From the NCBI RefSeq assembly GCF_009834535.1, contig NC_045714.1, forward strand, positions 14,756,001 through 14,820,000: a DNA stretch of 64,000 bases, in the 5' to 3' direction. Shown here piece after piece: positions 5,366-55,200 of this stretch. The translations under genes were made by a program, and so were the position numbers. The first letter of the stretch is position 1, and the number at the start of each line of letters is the position of its first letter. This stretch comes from Camelus ferus (Eukaryota). A model generated the notes under the pieces. It was not told the DNA's origin. It saw nothing but the letters and a program-made list of their open reading frames with translations, and did not search any database.

Positions 5366-6433
5366 CTAAAACGAGAAATTGCAAAATACTACATTTAAAT
5401 TTCAAAAAGTTACTTTTAAGCATGAAAATTAAAGGTAATAAGGCTTATCTCCATCAATTCCTAGTAGTCGTTGCTTCTACTTAAAAACAGTCATTACAAA
5501 ACTGGTACTTACACAACTAATTACAAAGATGATGCACAACTTTCAATAACTTAAGCTACCTTTCTGATAAAAATTAACTGCAATTTGGTAAATGCTGACA
5601 AAACAGAGGTGCAGACAAAATAATGTGAGGCACTCGTAGCCAGGTTTTGGTAAAGATGATGTGGTCTGAGACCCACGTGTACCACACAGAGAATGGCGCT
5701 TCCCAAAGCCTAGCTGTTCACGTGAGGAGAGGAGACCAGGAAACGCAGGGCAGCGTGGCTGGGAAGAGAGTGGGACAGAACAAGGCGTTGGTGAACGTGC
5801 TGTTATCTGCCCTGTTCTCATTTTCCTCTGTCACCGTGCCCAGCCAGGAAAGGAAGGGGGAGGTAAGGAAGTGCTGGGCCTTCTCCAATCTTAAAACACG
5901 ATGAACCGTATCTGCTTACACCCGAGTCTCTCTCTCACACACACACACACGTGTTAAAAACAATCTTCTGAGTAAACATAAAGCAGAGTCACTAGTTCTC
6001 ACAAGAATGAGTCCTGGGGGTCTGCCTCAAGACAGATCACAAGGGTTCCAGCTATCAGAGTAAGAGCTAGCTTACAGGGCCAAGGGCTGGCAAGTCACCC
6101 AGAGTCAGCCCCACACCTGGGGCACAGACAGGCAAGGCCCTGGCCAGGGTCCCCTCCCCCATTCAAATCAAGCATCTCGCGGTAGGAAAGGAAGATGGAA
6201 TTCTCTAACCACCTGTTTATTCATCTCTTGAAAAGTCTATTTTAAGCCCGTTAAATCTCCCCAAGTATCCCAACCTAAAGTTGCATCTCCCTGAACCTGC
6301 GCGTGGAAAACTTGGCGGTTCCAGGCGCCTCTCCGGAGCCCTGCTCTTACTCCGCACGGAGCGCCCGATTCCCAACAAGCCCCGCTTCCCGCTCCGCCCC
6401 GGGGCCCGCACGGCCCGTCCCGGCTCCGCTCAC

Positions 6434-6458
6434 CTTTATTATCTTGTCCTTTTGTTCG
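6434..6458 (-). CDS. YTHDF1: YTHDF1 coding exon 2 (25 nt; RTKGQDNK)
   Basis: CAG acceptor at 6461-6459, GTGAG donor at 6433-6429, phase consistent with exons 1 and 3. Confidence 0.96.
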
Positions 6459-6659
6459 CTGCTTCCCCGCAGGCCCGGACGTGCGAGTGGACAAAAGCCA
6501 GGAAAAGGAAACACAAAGTTATTCACGAGAACCCCTCCCAGGCAGGCGGCGCGCTCCGGCACGAAGGGCCCGCGGTCACAGGCGACGCCGGCCCGGTCCC
6601 TGGCCCCGCGACCCCGGCTCCCGGCTTCCGGCCCCCGGGCCCGCGACCCCGGCCGCTAC

Positions 6660-6686
6660 CTGGGGGTCCACGCTGGTGGCCGACAT
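6660..6686 (-). CDS. YTHDF1: YTHDF1 coding exon 1 (MSATSVDPQ), m6A reader protein
   Basis: ATG at 6686-6684 in context AGCATGT, GTAGC donor at 6659, peptide matches the YTHDF1 start. Confidence 0.97.
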
Positions 6687-6915
6687 GCTTCATGAACAGC
6701 GCGGCGCGGGGCCCGGGCGCCCGCCGGCTCGGGCCTCCCCGCGAGGTCGGGTCTGTCACCCGCGCTCTCGCGGCCCCGGGCCCGCCGCCTCCTTCCCGGG
6801 CGCCGGCCGGCCGGGCGGCGGCGGCGGCGGCGGCTGCTGGGCGCGCAGGCCGCGAGCGGGCCGGGCGCAGGGCGGCGAGCAGGACCGGACGCACTGACCA
6901 GGTGCTGATTCCAAT

Positions 6916-6916
<1 letters not shown>

Positions 6917-6946
<30 letters not shown>

Positions 6947-6985
6947 GCGACGGCGACGGCGACAGCGGCAGCAGCGGCGGCGACC
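6917..6985. repeat. Imperfect GCG/CGC trinucleotide repeat in the YTHDF1 5' UTR
   Basis: (GCG)8 followed by GCA/ACG-interrupted triplets. A second GCG run lies at about 6815-6832. Confidence 0.9.
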
Positions 6986-7929
6986 GGAACGAGGCTGCGC
7001 GACGTCAGCGCGCGCGGGGCAGGCTGGGAGGCCGACCTGCTGCCACGCGCCGCGCCTGCGCAGCGCCTTCCGGGGGGACGGATCTCGCGCCCGAGGGCCC
7101 AGTCTCGCGCGGCGGCTCAGGGGCGGGGCGAGCCCCGGAAGTCACGTGGGCGTGTCCAATGGCGCTGCGGGGGCCGCGACTCAGGGGGTCACCTACTGGG
7201 CCTCGAGCGCGCAGCCGCAGCGTGGGCAGTGGTGCTGCAGAGTCTCGGCGCCTGCAGCCGCTGGCTGGCTCAGGTAGTGGGCCCGATGACACCCCTGCGC
7301 TGGTCCCCGGGACGGGGAGAAGCGAAGCCAGCAAGTGCAGCCACTCCGAAAGCCACTTACAGCAGGCTGCAGTCCACTGTACCCTGCTGCTCGCCCCAAA
7401 CGCCCCGCCGGCATCCCTCGGAGGGGCGCCCAGGCGCCGAGCTTTGCTGTCCTCGGGGCGGCTCCTTGGTTTCTGCAGCAGCTGTCCCGGTAGAGCCCTG
7501 GGCTCGGGCCTCCCTGAAGGTCGGCTTTGCAAGCACTCTTGGATCTACAAGGGGCTCCCCAGTTTATAACCAGTTTGCATGTTAGATTCTTGACTCCGGG
7601 TTTCACCACGGGAAGGAAAAGAGAGGTCAGCTCTGCATGGCGCCCTTTTGGGCCTTTTGGTCTCTGTTCAGGGGTGGACAGCCCCTTCTTGGCTCCAGCT
7701 TCCTGAAGGGAGCCCAGTTCCCACTTCCTACTCACTTCCATGCCTTAACCCACGGAAGGTTCCAGCCTGGATGTCCCTCCTGGCTCTTGGGCCCCTGTGA
7801 CTACTTCCCAGCATGGCTTCCAAGTGGGTCTTTTCTTCTTTTCCAGCTCTGGCAGGTGTACCACCCTCACAAGGCCCAGGTCTGGGTCCTGTCCTTGTCC
7901 TGCTGAAGGTAAGAGGCCTGGAATGTTGG

Positions 7930-11552: not shown

Positions 11553-11880
11553 ATGGGGCTGGAGAACAGGGGCAAAAGTCAGTACTGTGGCCCGGAGCCG
11601 AGCCACTGGGTAGCTGGCGGCAGCCCTAATGAGGGACACCGTGAGCCCCACTTTCGGTGTGGCCACACCCAGCGCCAGGACCACACGGATGGGCAGATCC
11701 TGAGCCAGCTGCGCCCCCTGGCAGAGGAGGAGGAGGAAGAGGGGCCTGGGGCCTTGTCTGCCAGGCCCGCCTTCCCCGGGATGGGCTCCGAGGAGCTGCG
11801 GCTGGCCTCCTTCTATGACTGGCCGCTGACCAGCGCGGTACAGCCCGAGCTGCTGGCTGCCGCCGGCTTCTTCCACACGG
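11553..11880 (+). CDS. BIRC7: BIRC7 (Livin/ML-IAP) exon 1: N-terminus and start of BIR domain
   Basis: MGLENRG...[15 protein letters not shown]6-...[12 protein letters not shown]...[10 protein letters not shown]|GTGAGT donor, phase 1. Confidence 0.96.
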
Positions 11881-12684: not shown

Positions 12685-12784
12685 GCCAGCAGGACAAGGT
12701 TCGCTGCTTCTTCTGCTACGGAGGTCTGCAGAGCTGGGAACGAGGAGATGACCCCTGGACGGAGCACGCCCGGTGGTTCCCCAG
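12685..12784 (+). CDS. BIRC7: BIRC7 exon 2 (BIR: [31 protein letters not shown])
   Basis: CCCCAG acceptor, AG|GTACTG donor, Zn ligands C-x2-C and H present. Confidence 0.97.
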
Positions 12785-13084: not shown

Positions 13085-13163
13085 GTGTGAATTCCTGCTC
13101 CGGACAAAAGGAAGGGACTTTGTCTGCAGCGTCCAGGAGTCTTGTTGCCCGCCAGGCTCCTGG
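13085..13163 (+). CDS. BIRC7: BIRC7 exon 3 (end of BIR: RCEFLLRTKGRDFV...GSW)
   Basis: CTCAG acceptor, TGG|GTGAGT donor, 79 nt keeps the frame, fourth Zn ligand Cys present. Confidence 0.95.
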
Positions 13164-13251: not shown

Positions 13252-13297
13252 GACCGATCAGAGGAACCAGAAGACACGGGTCCAGCTGCCCCCTCAG
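13252..13297 (+). CDS. BIRC7: BIRC7 exon 4 (DRSEEPEDTGPAAPS)
   Basis: TTCCAG acceptor, CAG|GTGAGC donor, 46 nt, ends in phase 1. Confidence 0.93.
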
Positions 13298-13530: not shown

Positions 13531-14096
13531 GTGGCCACGGGGGCGTGGAGAGGGGCGGCCTTTGCCGGTGTGTCTGCCAGTCACCCTTCAAGAGCTCACT
13601 TGGCCAGAGTCACCAGCACACAGAGGAGCCGCCGTGCTGAGCTCTGCTTCCCGTGTGGTGCTCAGGACCCAGTGGGGTAGGGTCTGAGGGGCTCCAGGGT
13701 TCAGGTCCCGTGCTTCCACCCAGCCCTGTAACACATGATTCTGCTCTCTGAGCCTCAGTGCTCTGAGCTGTGAAATGGGATGGAGCCAACCTCATTTGGG
13801 ATTGAACGGGGTCCAGTGATGCCCCGGGAGCAGCACCTGGTGTGTCGCAGGACTGTCTGTGGCCGCTTTGGTCTCAGGCCTGTCACCTTCCCTGTGTGGG
13901 GGCACCTCTGATCCAGGCACTGGGAACACAGCCCTGACTTGGGCATGGCTGGAGCAGCCATGATGGCCACAGGGGCCCTCACGTGGAGGTGGCCCTGGTG
14001 ACGGATCAGAGTGGCAGGCCACTGCCTCTTTCCCAGGACCCCGAGGCCCTGGGCCCTGCCTGCCCTGGGTCCAGCACCCCTCATACTACCTTGCAG

Positions 14097-14300
14097 ATGC
14101 TGGGGACAGCCAGGAGTGGCCCGCGTGGAGCCAGTGCCCCGCCGTGCAGGCCGTGCTTGGGATGGGCTTCGGGCAGGGCCAAGTGTGGCAGCTGCTGCAG
14201 CGCAGGTACCGCCGGGCGGTGCCGACCAGCGTATCCGCGTCCCAGCTGGTGGCCGACCTGCTCCAGGAGGGGGACAGGGGCCGGGCTGTGGGGGCCAGAG
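14097..14300 (+). CDS. BIRC7: Candidate BIRC7 exon encoding an IAP-type UBA domain (204 nt, 68 codons)
   Basis: CTACCTTGCAG acceptor, GAG|GTACCT donor, phase 1-1, no stop. The peptide QCPAVQAVLGMGF-x25-LVADLL aligns without gaps to the XIAP UBA (QNPMVQEAIRMGF-x25-LVADLV, recalled sequence). Confidence 0.8.
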
Positions 14301-14584
14301 GTACCTCCGCCTCTCTGGACACTGCCCCCACCTTTCCTGCCTCACTGCTCCCACAGTGCCCGGCACACAGTGTCCATGGCACCACGTGAGGTGCTGCACA
14401 GGCAGAGCGCCCCGGTGTGGAGGGGGAGCTGGGATTCTGGCGCGCTGGGCGGGGCGGGGGGCAGATGTGGGGGCAGGGGCTGTACTGCCAGTCAGAACTG
14501 GACCTCGCCTGCAGCCAGCTGTCTCTGGGCCAGGCCTTACCTCCCCGGGGACCTGGGCCTTAAGGCTCTTCTAACTGCCCACAG

Positions 14585-14656
14585 CTCCTGTCCACCTGGG
14601 GCCTGAGCTGCCCGTGCCCAGAAGAGAGGCCCCGTTGGAAGGAGCCAGGGAGCCAG
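14585..14656 (+). CDS. BIRC7: BIRC7 exon 5 (72 nt; [24 protein letters not shown])
   Basis: CTAACTGCCCACAG acceptor, CAG|GTGGAG donor, similar to the human Livin ELPTPRREV...QEP segment. Confidence 0.92.
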
Positions 14657-14859
14657 GTGGAGGGGGCGCCTAGGGTGGGAGTGGGGCCGGGCCTCCTGCC
14701 TCCTGCGGTGGGGGCGGCCACCCCTGGTCTGGCCCGCCTCCCACATCTGCCAACACAGAGGGCTGAGGTCAGGGTGTGGGGATGGTGTCACAGGTCGCCC
14801 TTGTGGAGAAGCGGGTGGAGCCCAGGCCCAGTGGGTGCTGGTGGCCCCAGAGTCCCCAG

Positions 14860-15053
14860 GAGCGCGGGATGCAGAGGAACAGCTGCAGCGCCTGCGGGAG
14901 GAGCGGACCTGCCGCGTGTGCCTGGACCGCACCGTGGCCGTTGTTTTCGTGCCCTGTGGCCACCTGGCCTGTGCCGAGTGCGCACCCAGCCTGCAGCTGT
15001 GCCCCATCTGCAGGGCCCCCATTGGCAGCTGCGTGCGCACCTTCCTGTCCTAG
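14860..15053 (+). CDS. BIRC7: BIRC7 exon 6, RING domain to stop (Livin-beta-type acceptor)
   Basis: [23 protein letters not shown]...CGH..C..C...CPICR...VRTFLS*. Exons 1-6 sum to 819 nt (272 aa), or 340 aa with the UBA exon. A donor follows at 15058/15059 (3' UTR intron). Confidence 0.96.
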
Positions 15054-15929
15054 GCCAGGTGAGTGTTTGGACACCAGGCTGCCCCTGAGATTTTGGAACA
15101 GGCCTGGACAGTGACCACAAGCATGCCGTCTCCTGTGGTCCTGATGGTGGCCCAGCGTCGCAGGGACCGGGGGGGGGGCAGGAGATGGCACTACTTACTC
15201 CCGCCACCTCCCTGGCCCCACAGACGTTGCCCGTCCACTCCCCCTGGTGCTTGGGTACCTGCACTGAATTCTTCTCAACGCAGCATCCCAGGCGGCCACT
15301 GCCACCCTGCTTGGGCGTGTTAAGCCACACCCACTGGGCACATCTCTGCCCGGGTTTCTTAGTGCTCAGAGGGATGGTGCCACCCGTCCAGCCGGGCATA
15401 GAGGGCGGCACCCTGGCCGAGGGTTGCTCAGCTTCGGGGGTGTATGGAGAGCACATGCCGCCCTTGTCAAGGGGAGGGGGCTGGGGTCTGCCTGAGCGTG
15501 GACCCCACAGGGATCCCAACCTGGGAGCAGAGTCCTGATGGAAATGCATGGTGTGGGGGGGGGGGCCCTTCGGCGTCACGGAGGTGGGGGCAGGAGCCAC
15601 GGCCTTCTCAGGGTCTCTGTGCTCCAGGATCTCCCCAAGAATCTTCCGGGGTGGAAGTAGCAGGGAAGGAACCTCTCAGGGCTGAGGGGTCCCAGCCGGG
15701 TGGACAAGCCAACTGGAGCTGCTGCTCCCACCTCCTCCCCTCCAGGAGCTGTGAGTACCGCTCCAGGAGGGCACCCCACTCGCTCAGCCTGTCCCTTGGC
15801 CCACTCGGCGGCCCGTTGGGGATGGCTGAGCTGGTGTCCAGCACTGACCAGCCCAGCGAGGAAGAGGGAGCTGTGGACGGCTTGGTGGAGGGGGTGGGAG
15901 CCTACCTGTGGAAGCTTTGGAAGAGTCGA

Positions 15930-15935
15930 AATAAA
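15930..15935 (+). terminator. BIRC7 polyadenylation signal
   Basis: AATAAA followed by the GU-rich GTGTGGGTTTTCC. Confidence 0.8.
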
Positions 15936-16170: not shown

Positions 16171-16851
16171 CCACTTGTGGGCACCTTGGGGGATGCCCTA
16201 GGACTATTTCATGGGGGGGGGGGGGACTTGAACAGGACCCGCCCCCCATCAGCACATTTCCAGGCAGCTCTTGTCCTGTGGCTCCTGGGCAAGCCCAGCC
16301 CCCACCCCAGGGTTCCACCAGCCACAGCACCTGGGGCAGGTGGGGCCTGGTGGGCACAGTGTTGAGTCAGGAACCTGCACTCGGGTGGGGGTCTCTAGGG
16401 ACTCATGCTGACCTTCATGGTGGGGTCACACTTCCCCATCTCGCAGTCCTGGGGCCAGCCCCTCTCCCCAGCACGGGTGTGTGCAGCGTCTGGGTGCCTG
16501 GCTGCCCCAGGACAGGGCTCCCAGGGAAGGGGGCTCATTGGACAGCAGCCCCAGGCCTGCTGTGGACAGAGAGCAACCCTAGTGCTGCCAGAGGCCAGGT
16601 ATGACATTTCCTTCTGTGTCTTTTTCTTTCTTTTTTTTTTTTTAAGAAAAAGGAAACAGCAAACTTTTTGATGTTGCATCCATCTTCCACCAGCTCAGGT
16701 CCAGTCACTCGACCCTGGGGCAGGTGCTCAGCCCCTGCAGGGTCCCTGGGGCAGGAAGGCCCAGTGCGTCCCGCTGCCTGGCGTCTGCTCACCATCTGCA
16801 GTGGGTCACTGAGGCTGGTGGGGTCACAGGAGGGGGTGGACGCTCCTTCAC

Positions 16852-21421: not shown

Positions 21422-21445
21422 GGGGGGGGGGGGGGGGGGGGGGGG
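21422..21445 (+). repeat. Poly-G tract (24 nt)
   Basis: Directly visible homopolymer next to the RE1 site. Confidence 0.95.
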
Positions 21446-52233: not shown

Positions 52234-55200
52234 CATCCTTCCTGGTGGCACATGTGGCCACGTGTCGGTGGCTGAGGCTTGTCTCCCCCGACGCATCCTG
52301 ACTTTCTGTTGGTGCCGGCTTTTTCCCTCCTGAGGAAGCTCCGGAGCTGCCATCGCCCCTCCTGCACTCCACTCCCAAGCCCTGTCTTGGTAGGGCCTGT
52401 GCCTCGCGGGCCGGGGTCTGCACTGTCGCCCACCTGCCGTCAGCCCTCCACGAGTGTCTGCTTGCCGGGCCTCAGCGCTGGGACTCGGTGCCCGCAGGGA
52501 GGCCCGTGGGCATCCAGGGTGCTCTGGGATGGGGGCGCATCGGTACTTCGAAGCACCGGCCAGTCTGGTGGTGCTCCTGGTCCTCAGCCTTCCTCGCAGC
52601 CCCAGCCCTGCTGGTGTTGGCTGCGCCTGAGATGCTGGCCCCCTGCCCCCCACCGTCTCCTCGCACCACAGTTTGGATCTCTGTCGGCCTAGAGCCCAGC
52701 TGACTTTGGCCCCTGTGTGTCGGCCCCCTTGTTCTTGTGGCCTGGCACTGACAGGTGCCTGGTCCACCCATCAGCTCTGATGACCTCGTGAGACATGAGG
52801 CCGTGGTCGGTGCCCTGTCCCCACACCTGCCTCTGCTGACCCTCCCGTCTGTGAGCCGAGCTTTGACCTGGTGCTGCACAGACCTGAGTCCTTTGGGATT
52901 TGTGCAGGACGTCCCCATCCCTGCCCCACTCTGGTGGCCACGGCCCTGCCAGATGGGCCCCTCTCCCGCGTGAGGGCTTGTGTGTCAGGGCTGCAGTATG
53001 TCCCTGAAGTGGGGGCTGACAGAGGGGCCAGTGTGGGACAGCCCTGCCGCCCATAGCTCTCCCTTCAGGATGTCCACGCGTGCTTCTGGCTGACTTTGAG
53101 GATCTCAGTCACTGAGCCAGTAGTTGACCTGGATCTGAGGTTAGAGGTCAGGCTTAGGCTGACAAGAAGACCCAGGTCAGGCCAAAAGCCAGGGCCGCAT
53201 TTGGCCAGTCGGGCCCAGAGCTGGGGAGCTCAGGGGAGCCAGGCGCAAGGCGAGCATCCCCATTGGGCTGACATGGTGCCGCTGTGGCGTCCCTCAGGTC
53301 AGCGCCGTCCGGGTGGGGGGGTGTGGCCCATCCCACTGCAGGCTTCAGGGGCATTTGTTCTGTTGGTTCTGGTCCAGGAGGCCCTGCCCCAGAGTCCACG
53401 TTAAGCTGGGAGTAAGGTGCCCTCTGCCCTGGGGCCCTGTTCACCACCAGGTGCAGGGACTGGGGCTGAGTGGGGATCTCTGCCCCCACGCCCACTTCAG
53501 GAGCGCTGGGATGTGGTGGTTTGACCGTCCGGTTCCCCCCCCCCCCCCCCCCGCACGGAGGCGCTGACGTCACCATAAAAACACGCAGGAACACGGAGTG
53601 GTCTGGCTGACTCCCAAAGGGCCACTTCCAACAAAGGTGCAGGCAGGGACCAGGCCAGGTGTGCGGGTTAGAGACCGCCGGAGGGTTCTGGACCTGAGGC
53701 TGTGTCTCCTGGTCGGTCTTCCGTGTTGTCTTGTCCGGGGCAGCACTTTGGGGCAGGTGGGCCCAGACCGAACAGGTGAAGGTGGTTGGGTCTGGGTGCG
53801 GAGGCCGGTCTGGGCTGGGTGTGGTTCTGGGTGGGACAGTGCTGGAGCCTGTTCTTGGCTGATCCCAGTCACCACCCCCACCCCACCTGGCTTGTACAGG
53901 CCAGGCTGGCCTCCATCTCTCCAGACAGCTCACCCATCAGCCATGGAGCTGCCCTCGGCCCCCGAGCTCTGTGTGCTGCCCACCCAGACTGGGCCTCCTG
54001 GCCAGTCTCCACTCCCTGTTTGCCCCAGACTTGGCCAAGGCGCCAGGACTGATCAGCAGACACTTCAGGGCAGCCCCTGGTCAGCTTAGGTCCCTTTTCC
54101 AGAACTTGCATCCAACCAGGGACGACCTGTTTTTCCTGGCTGCCCCCTTTACATGTGTCCACTTTTGCTGCCACCCTGTCCAAAAGTTCCTCCCAGCCAG
54201 GTAGCCCTGCCCTGTGGGCCCTATGCGTGTAAGTGCAGATGCTGGCGGCCCTCCTGGGGCCCCACGCCCTGAGCCAGCCCTGCAGGAATACGGGGAGCAG
54301 AGCTTCCTGGGGGCTGTATGGGTTGGGGTTCCTGGGTGGTGGGCGCCCCACCCTCTGCACCTACTCCGGTCCCACCAGCCGTGCTGTGTGCTGACCCAGC
54401 AGCCAGGTCGCACGGGGTGGGGCTTGCAGCAGCTACACTGAGGCACGGCTCAGTACTGAGGGTTGGCTGCCCAGGCGCTCAGAACTGGAGCTCCTGGGGT
54501 CCCTCCCCACCGCTGGGGCTGGGGGAAGTGGGGCCTCTGCTCGGGGTCCCCACCTGGACGCTGGAATGAGGGCCATGATGGGGGACTTGCACCAGCCAGG
54601 ATGCCACGGCTGTGCCACTTCCAGAGCTCTCCCAGCGAGGGGCCTGCCTGGCTCTAACCTGTCCTTTCTCAGCTGTGACCCTGGGCAGCGCATGCCCTGG
54701 CCGATCCCTGACCCTGCTAGGTCGGCTGCAAGCCCTCGGGTGCTCGCGGGCACAGAGCACCTGTTGGGTTCAGAGACTCCTGGGCGGGCACATGGGGTGG
54801 GGGACCAGATGGGGTCCAGCCAAGGGCACTTGCTGACTGGCTCACACGAGTGGAGGGCAGTTCCTTGGAGCGTGTGGACATGCACATGAGTGTCCTGCGT
54901 GCCTGTGAGCCATGGACGTGGATTGATGGTGTTAGTTGTCGCCGCTAGACCAGGCGCCCTCTGCTGGCTTCTGCTTGGGTCTGCAGGGCCCACCTATGTG
55001 GCAGGGTGTGGGTCCCAGGACCCCAGGACCCCAGCACCCAGCACCCAGTGCAAGGCATCCACCAGCACTGCAGCATCCATAGCATCTAGCCATGGGTTCA
55101 CAGGCTTGGGCGGCTCTCGGGCCACAAGTCTCAGACCTCCCTTGCCTTGAGATGCTCAGGTCAGGAGCACTGACCGCCAGGCAGGATGACAGGGCGGGGT

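Follow-up and report, generated by a model that had tools for sequence, protein, structure and literature searches.

Does Livin, the product of BIRC7, carry a UBA domain in the camel? In reviews, a UBA is assigned to cIAP1/2, XIAP and ILP2, and ML-IAP (Livin) is drawn as a BIR-RING protein (PMC7290580). A 2026 survey describes the presence of the UBA as labile or hard to predict and, for human BIRC7, discusses the loss of the BIR alone; in the literature, we found no paper on a UBA in non-primate mammalian Livin. The question is raised by a 204-nt block lying between two linker exons of BIRC7 in Camelus ferus, which a first-pass annotation described as a hidden, intact UBA exon of this mammal. 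Here, we report on this block and on the window that contains it (the whole stretch of DNA analysed, 64 kb), considering the gene model, the homology of the encoded peptide, the history of the exon in other mammals and the function that the domain might have.

The BIRC7 gene of Camelus ferus and its UBA exon

The gene model, rebuilt from GT-AG boundaries and frame continuity, consists of seven exons when the block is included (Table 1). The product is 362 aa long with the block and 294 aa without it, the frame being open either way, and it is recognizable as a BIRC7 ortholog by its one BIR, its C-terminal RING and 64-74% identity to other Laurasiatherian BIRC7 proteins. The anatomy of the block was confirmed at every position: 204 nt of phase 1-1, with a cag acceptor, a GAG/gtacct donor (the slash marks the exon boundary) and 67 full codons free of stops. 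Its acceptor reads ...catactaccttgcag/AT, the AG occupying 14095-14096. The window holds zero N bases, and an AATAAA is found at 15930-15935, about 880 nt past the BIRC7 stop codon.

Table 1. Coordinates of the camel BIRC7 exons, of the elements of the UBA exon, and of the same exon in other mammalian loci
Feature	Position	Strand	Remarks
BIRC7 exon 1	11553..11880	+	ATG, N-terminal region, acidic E-run, beginning of the BIR
BIRC7 exon 2	12685..12784	+	BIR core; 84-100% identity with cattle, orca, panda and hedgehog exons
BIRC7 exon 3	13085..13163	+	End of the BIR, start of the linker
BIRC7 exon 4	13252..13297	+	46-nt linker exon, ending in phase 1
Pyrimidine-rich tract and AG acceptor of the UBA exon	14077..14096	+	
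UBA exon	14097..14300	+	204 nt, phase 1-1; protein residues 185-253 of 362 aa, including two split codons
MGF loop, helix 1/helix 2	14162..14170	+	Equivalent to XIAP Met382-Gly383-Phe384
LVADLL, helix 3	14246..14263	+	Leu54-Leu55 (14258-14263) correspond to XIAP Leu414-Val415
UBA exon donor GTACCT (GAG/gtacct)	14301..14306	+	No G at +5
BIRC7 exon 5	14585..14656	+	72-nt linker exon, phase 1-1
BIRC7 last coding exon	14794..15053	+	Linker, RING, TAG stop
Cattle exon	L001 3901-4104		AG/GT boundaries, phase 1-1
Orca exon	L002 4299-4502		AG/GT boundaries, phase 1-1
Hedgehog exon	L003 4877-5077		AG/GT boundaries, phase 1-1
Panda exon	L005 3874-4077		AG/GT boundaries, phase 1-1
Opossum exon	L006 9352-9561		AG/GT boundaries, phase 1-1
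Echidna exon	L009 7366-7551		AG/GT boundaries, phase 1-1

The 340-aa Livin proposed at first sight holds if an internal acceptor of the last exon, at 14858-14859 (ccccag/GA), is used together with the UBA exon, giving a product 22 aa shorter; it does not hold for the seven-exon model, in which the last exon begins at 14794. The short form is the one found in the stoat, dingo and hyena models, and the choice of the last-exon acceptor varies among orthologous BIRC7 models. We take the alternatives at 14858-14860 to be the parallel of human Livin alpha/beta, the short form being presumably Livin-beta-like.

The translation of exon 1 matches C. ferus XP_032317445.1 at 100%; in fact, the entire 362-aa model with the block is residue for residue XP_032317445.1 (RefSeq BIRC7 isoform X2, Camelus ferus). 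The UBA exon is already annotated coding sequence of camel BIRC7 and not a discovery. The word "hidden" has therefore to be dropped, the exon being present in this model and in BIRC7 models deposited for over 40 further species, and genome annotation is unchanged because the species' own RefSeq model already includes it; the value of the exon is comparative.

The model differs at one position from that of C. bactrianus, at three from that of dromedary and at ten from that of alpaca, and the cluster of the dromedary model groups the 362-aa RefSeq proteins of C. dromedarius, C. bactrianus, C. ferus and Vicugna pacos; camelid models of 361 aa and 381 aa also contain the exon. Codon GGG at 14270-14272 encodes Gly243, just past LLQE, where C. 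bactrianus, C. dromedarius, Vicugna and nearly all other species have Glu; the Gly thus represents a change or polymorphism specific to C. ferus. An Arg-to-Gly change directly preceding MGF is common to all camelids.

Elsewhere in the window, a 434-codon frame at 6281-7585 was rejected as a gene, consisting of poly-Ala, GC-rich low-complexity sequence. It holds a 27-nt tandem repeat (6920-6984) and is situated where the window is richest in CpG (observed/expected 0.64); rather than a protein, it probably represents a CpG island or the beginning (5' end) of a neighbouring gene. Downstream of BIRC7, homopolymer runs are found at 15169-15178 (G10), 15555-15565 (G11), 16213-16225 (G13), 21422-21445 (G24) and 53535-53552 (C18), which may be assembly-sensitive sites. 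An Rfam search of the window gave no match.

Homology to the UBA domains of IAP proteins

In this locus, with about 65% GC, the block is contained in four open frames out of a possible six: the three forward ones (13964-14386, 13983-14606 and 14011-14574) and one on the reverse strand (13755-14399). For this reason a stop-free block is uninformative alone, and what exceeds chance is the homology, as established by scanning the window with an IAP-UBA profile. This profile contained only UBA domains of BIRC2/3 and of non-therian BIRC7, no eutherian BIRC7 being included, and it was run against the 1353 six-frame fragments of the 64 kb; the frame of the exon was the sole match (34.7 bits, E = 8.2e-10), and the runner-up had E = 5.6. 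Furthermore, the exon follows those of the BIR and precedes that of the RING, the placement expected of an IAP UBA.

Single-sequence searches did not reveal this relationship. With phmmer, the 67-aa peptide found no IAP UBA in the PDB but only unrelated weak matches, and among 1.8 billion representative proteins it reached neither XIAP nor cIAP; the eight matches obtained there, with 66-76% identity, were orthologous exons only, including that of stoat BIRC7 isoform X1, in which the UBA exon is spliced in exactly. Profiles of the exon itself did match IAP UBA domains. When five Laurasiatherian exons were combined and compared with the PDB (177,635 sequences), the top two matches were cIAP1 3T6P (E = 0.0076) and XIAP-UBA 2KNA (E = 0.012); with the addition of opossum and echidna, the E-values were 8.8e-9 and 3.8e-5, respectively. 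Both alignments were gapless, and the ungapped XIAP alignment given in the first-pass annotation was reproduced by HMMER against 2KNA. In profile-profile comparison by hhalign, the Laurasiatherian profile matched the BIRC2/3 UBA with 97.6% probability (P = 4.8e-12) and the non-therian BIRC7 UBA carrying Pfam PF21290 with 98.5% probability. An IAP UBA homology between BIR and RING is thus supported by the HMMER profiles, by hhalign and by the window scan.

The precomputed Pfam list of the camel protein (P0046) gives BIR and RING only, PF21290 (UBA_BIRC2-3) being absent; this family is recorded on BIRC7 of dog, fox, echidna, turtle, gar and paddlefish, the first two being the only eutherians. 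On the IAP-UBA profile of the window scan, built from Pfam-positive members and distinct from the Pfam HMM, camel scores 37.4 bits, the Pfam-positive dog 47.3 bits and panda 35 bits. On these scores, the missing label looks like a threshold effect.

The predicted fold points in the same direction. For the exon alone, AlphaFold2 (pLDDT 76) places helices at residues 6-11, 14-21, 26-36 and 47-63, with the MGF loop (residues 22-24) between the second and the third of them, so that the three-helix bundle anticipated for the peptide is borne out by the model with the addition of a short N-terminal helix. In the full-length dromedary model, the order is BIR, a helical module at 208-269 and RING, the module being the sole folded one in between; its pLDDT is about 87-90, a confidence comparable to that of BIR and RING, and the flanking linkers are below 50. 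Foldseek ranked cIAP1 3T6P first for the exon model (probability 0.89, TM 0.63), with UBASH3A-UBA and USP5 third and fourth; for a model of 67 residues the E-values are non-significant, and the ranking alone was used. Taken together, we are largely confident that the block codes for a UBA domain of the IAP type in BIRC7, which has diverged but is intact.

Conservation, skipping and loss of the exon

The exon is not a peculiarity of the camel, as the wording of the first description implied, but is widespread in Laurasiatheria, marsupials and monotremes. Word-indexed searches retrieved it in BIRC7 models of carnivores (mustelids, walrus, fur seal, panda, cats, dog/dingo, fox and hyena), of cetartiodactyls (cattle, bison, buffalo, musk deer, goat, sheep, pig and several cetaceans), and of hedgehog, opossum, Tasmanian devil and echidna, and a local profile scan of every fetched protein reproduced the same distribution. 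In 14 carnivore and cetartiodactyl models it is spliced in identically. Six metagenome-derived ENA/Logan proteins (P0001-P0004, P0009 and P0010) result from prokaryote-style ORF calling applied to the DNA of mammalian hosts, running through the exon and its flanking introns; they look whale-, cat-, hyena-, dog- and ruminant-like.

At the DNA level, we compared loci in which panda represents the carnivores and pig is not included (Table 1). The acceptor cttgcag/AT is kept in cattle, orca, panda, hedgehog, horse and guinea pig and reads tttgcag in opossum and echidna; the GAG/gt donor is kept in cattle, orca, panda, hedgehog, opossum and echidna, and is GC in horse. Of the 67 exon positions, 23 do not vary in a set of 15 Laurasiatherian sequences, including CPAV, MGF and LVADLLQE. 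Pairwise dN/dS of the UBA exon averages 0.29 (range 0.20-0.55), with means of 0.10 for the BIR exon and 0.23 for the RING in comparison. For five of six pairs its bootstrap interval stays under 1, and one interval extends to 1.27. The pairs that contain camel are the least constrained, with the highest values (0.44-0.55). Against hedgehog, dS exceeds 1 and dN is 0.27, and nucleotide similarity hardly extends past the exon, ending within a few bases on its flanks. The UBA exon is under purifying selection. A dead splice site, one of the marks of a fossil, was found in horse, and the splice sites of the loci in Table 1 are kept as far as echidna.

These data bear on the idea that the block is an unexpressed pseudo-exon, retained by gene predictors for its open frame and splice-like ends. 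Open frames are indeed common here, and the models are computational predictions with XP_ accessions; nevertheless, splice sites and phase have been kept since the monotreme split, the similarity to hedgehog stops at the exon, dN/dS is about 0.3, and the horse copy displays the look that a true pseudo-exon has. We regard this reading as very improbable.

The ancestry of the exon follows the same pattern. The first-pass view of an ancestral exon was upheld by the opossum and echidna exons, which agree with that of camel in phase and splice sites, and by PF21290 on BIRC7 of echidna, turtle, gar and paddlefish. The exon was probably inherited vertically from an ancestral vertebrate BIRC7, because similarity falls stepwise from camel to other Laurasiatherians, marsupials, echidna, turtles and fish and, finally, BIRC2/3, and because the exon is orthologous in position and phase. 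On these grounds, we also rejected an acquisition of the exon from XIAP or cIAP as well as a chance ORF.

In other lineages the exon has been lost, and three losses are visible at the DNA level: a complete one in a primate (gibbon), one leaving only a helix-3 remnant in rodents, and a pseudo-exon in horse. The horse block (L004:4290-4520) is dead, with an in-frame TAG, deletions of 44 nt and 5 nt and a GT-to-GC donor; the 44-nt deletion takes out MGF and helix 2, and the annotated horse protein skips the block. The horse copy illustrates the speed at which an exon out of use decays. The loss presumed for primates and rodents was found in the former, for gibbon as the only primate tested, and takes another form in the latter, where the exon is truncated. 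In fact, in the gibbon intron blastn, tblastn, Smith-Waterman and a profile scan gave no signal above shuffled controls, and guinea pig (L008:3815-4000) has a 75-nt in-frame deletion leaving, between intact splice sites, a mini-exon with the helix-3 part only (..LLQEE..), as linker. The same remnant occurs in squirrel, marmot, porcupine and two cricetid models (rodent models P0070, P0076, P0093, P0098, P0107 and P0109). For bat and pangolin the comparison covered protein models, from which the exon is absent. Among the pinnipeds, a read-through model of the southern elephant seal (Mirounga leonina, P0045) has VGF in place of MGF and a sequence that diverges afterwards, and the 306-aa model of the northern elephant seal (M. 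angustirostris, P0047) skips the exon. The elephant seals may represent a loss inside the pinnipeds, which would be recent because walrus and fur seal retain the exon.

Skipping also occurs in models of lineages that keep the exon. A second reading, proposed in the first-pass annotation, is a symmetric cassette of 204 nt whose inclusion would depend on tissue or state, so that Livin would alternate between a BIR-UBA-RING and a BIR-RING form. Its phase 1-1 and its length, a multiple of three, leave the frame unaffected on skipping (294 aa), and the donor has no G at +5. Models with exact exon 4-to-5 skipping are found in dog, hyena, blue whale, musk deer, narwhal, reindeer and Kogia, and exon-containing models exist for the same or closely related species, with both forms in dog and hyena. 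However, all camelid models retrieved contain the exon, none of them showing the 294-aa form, and several of the skipping models come from Ensembl-type pipelines, which may project the human exon structure. Regulated inclusion is compatible with an intact UBA domain and is possible, even if we consider it rather unlikely; if it exists, skipping might tune ubiquitin binding in the species that keep the exon.

Ubiquitin binding and comparison with known systems

The role of the MGF loop of XIAP and the ubiquitin-binding motif, consisting of MGF and of LL/LV at the end of helix 3, have been described (PMC3240630), and the structure reported there was the basis for mapping camel residues onto XIAP. 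The core positions Val376, Ala379, Ile389, Ile392, Leu410 and Leu414 of XIAP correspond to Val, Val, Val, Leu, Leu and Leu in camel; Pro374 and Met-Gly-Phe are retained, and the Leu414-Val415 position is Leu-Leu. MGF is invariant in 25 of 25 aligned BIRC7 and BIRC2/3 sequences and LVADLL in 15 of 15 Laurasiatherian ones. On the other side, the ubiquitin contact Leu407 of XIAP is Ala in camel, and the TG..Y motif shared by the UBA of non-therian BIRC7 and BIRC2/3 is replaced.

On this basis, the encoded domain is predicted to comprise a short N-terminal helix followed by three helices, with the MGF loop and a Leu-Leu pair at the end of helix 3, and this surface would bind the Ile44 patch of ubiquitin, as XIAP-UBA does. 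The UBA might then hold the Livin E3 close to partners that are ubiquitylated, or to a ubiquitin-charged E2, as described for cIAP1 and XIAP, and might in this way affect the site of action of the Livin RING or the type of chain that it assembles. The mechanism is drawn from work on XIAP and cIAP1 (PMC3240630; PMC7290580). By analogy with these proteins, we lean slightly towards the view that the camel UBA retains ubiquitin binding.

The main rival to ubiquitin binding is a module that is spliced and translated but has drifted, so that it no longer binds ubiquitin; such a module would act only as a spacer with a fold, or would be in the course of being lost. The change of XIAP Leu407 to Ala and the disappearance of TG..Y agree with drift, as do the missing PF21290 match on the camel protein and on most eutherian BIRC7, the 10 bits separating camel from dog on the IAP-UBA profile, the relatively high dN/dS of the camel pairs (0.44-0.55) and the independent losses in horse, primates and rodents. 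Nevertheless, MGF, LVADLLQE and the six core positions are invariant or conservatively replaced in 15 Laurasiatherian sequences, dN/dS is well below 1, with a dS above 1 against a dN of 0.27 in the comparison with hedgehog, and the AlphaFold2 confidence of the UBA is comparable to that of BIR and RING; furthermore, where the exon fell out of use, in horse, it decayed outright. A drifted, non-binding module is in our judgement unlikely, a little more so than regulated skipping, and we retain ubiquitin binding as the working interpretation.

The repeated losses in horse, primates and rodents show that the UBA is dispensable for Livin. From an evolutionary standpoint, ancestral mammalian Livin may have been a ubiquitin-binding BIR-UBA-RING ligase, still made by most Laurasiatherians, marsupials and monotremes, with the BIR-RING form of human and mouse derived through several independent losses; we give this scenario an even chance. 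The portrayal of ML-IAP as BIR-RING is a modest gap in a human-centred literature, rather than a discovery to be claimed. The Livin of cattle, pig, dog, cat, camel and whale carries a conserved UBA-type module, and if this binds ubiquitin or charged E2, the biology of human and mouse Livin may not transfer to livestock and companion animals. Moreover, the repeated losses represent a natural experiment on the contribution of the UBA to an IAP E3 ligase.

Among the known systems, human Livin alpha/beta (ML-IAP) is the product of the same gene and shares BIR and RING, but it is drawn as BIR-RING, and the primate intron, tested in gibbon, is traceless. XIAP (BIRC4) has three BIRs, unlike the single-BIR BIRC7, and its UBA (2KNA) has the same placement between the last BIR and RING and aligns without gaps over 45 residues, with Pro374, the six core positions, MGF and the Leu414-Val415 position retained in camel, and with a short N-terminal helix also predicted for the latter. 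The two domains, in contrast, are only about 25% identical and are not connected by single-sequence search; besides Leu407, which is Ala in camel, the Ser-Asn-Tyr-Lys preceding helix 3 of XIAP has become Pro-Thr-Ser-Val. The UBA of cIAP1 (BIRC2, 3T6P) is the best match both by profile (E = 8.8e-9) and by Foldseek, gapless over 55 residues; however, cIAP1 has a CARD between UBA and RING and a closed, autoinhibited arrangement, whereas in camel BIRC7 disordered linkers are predicted on both sides of the UBA. Finally, BIRC7 of echidna, turtle, gar and paddlefish is the orthologous gene with PF21290 recorded, and the echidna and opossum exons are orthologous to that of camel; non-mammalian BIRC7 proteins are longer (383-439 aa), and the therian UBA, unlike the non-therian one, has lost TG..Y and in most species lies below the threshold recorded by Pfam. 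The closest solved relatives of the camel domain are therefore cIAP1-UBA and XIAP-UBA, and its closest family is the Pfam-labelled UBA of echidna, turtle and fish BIRC7.
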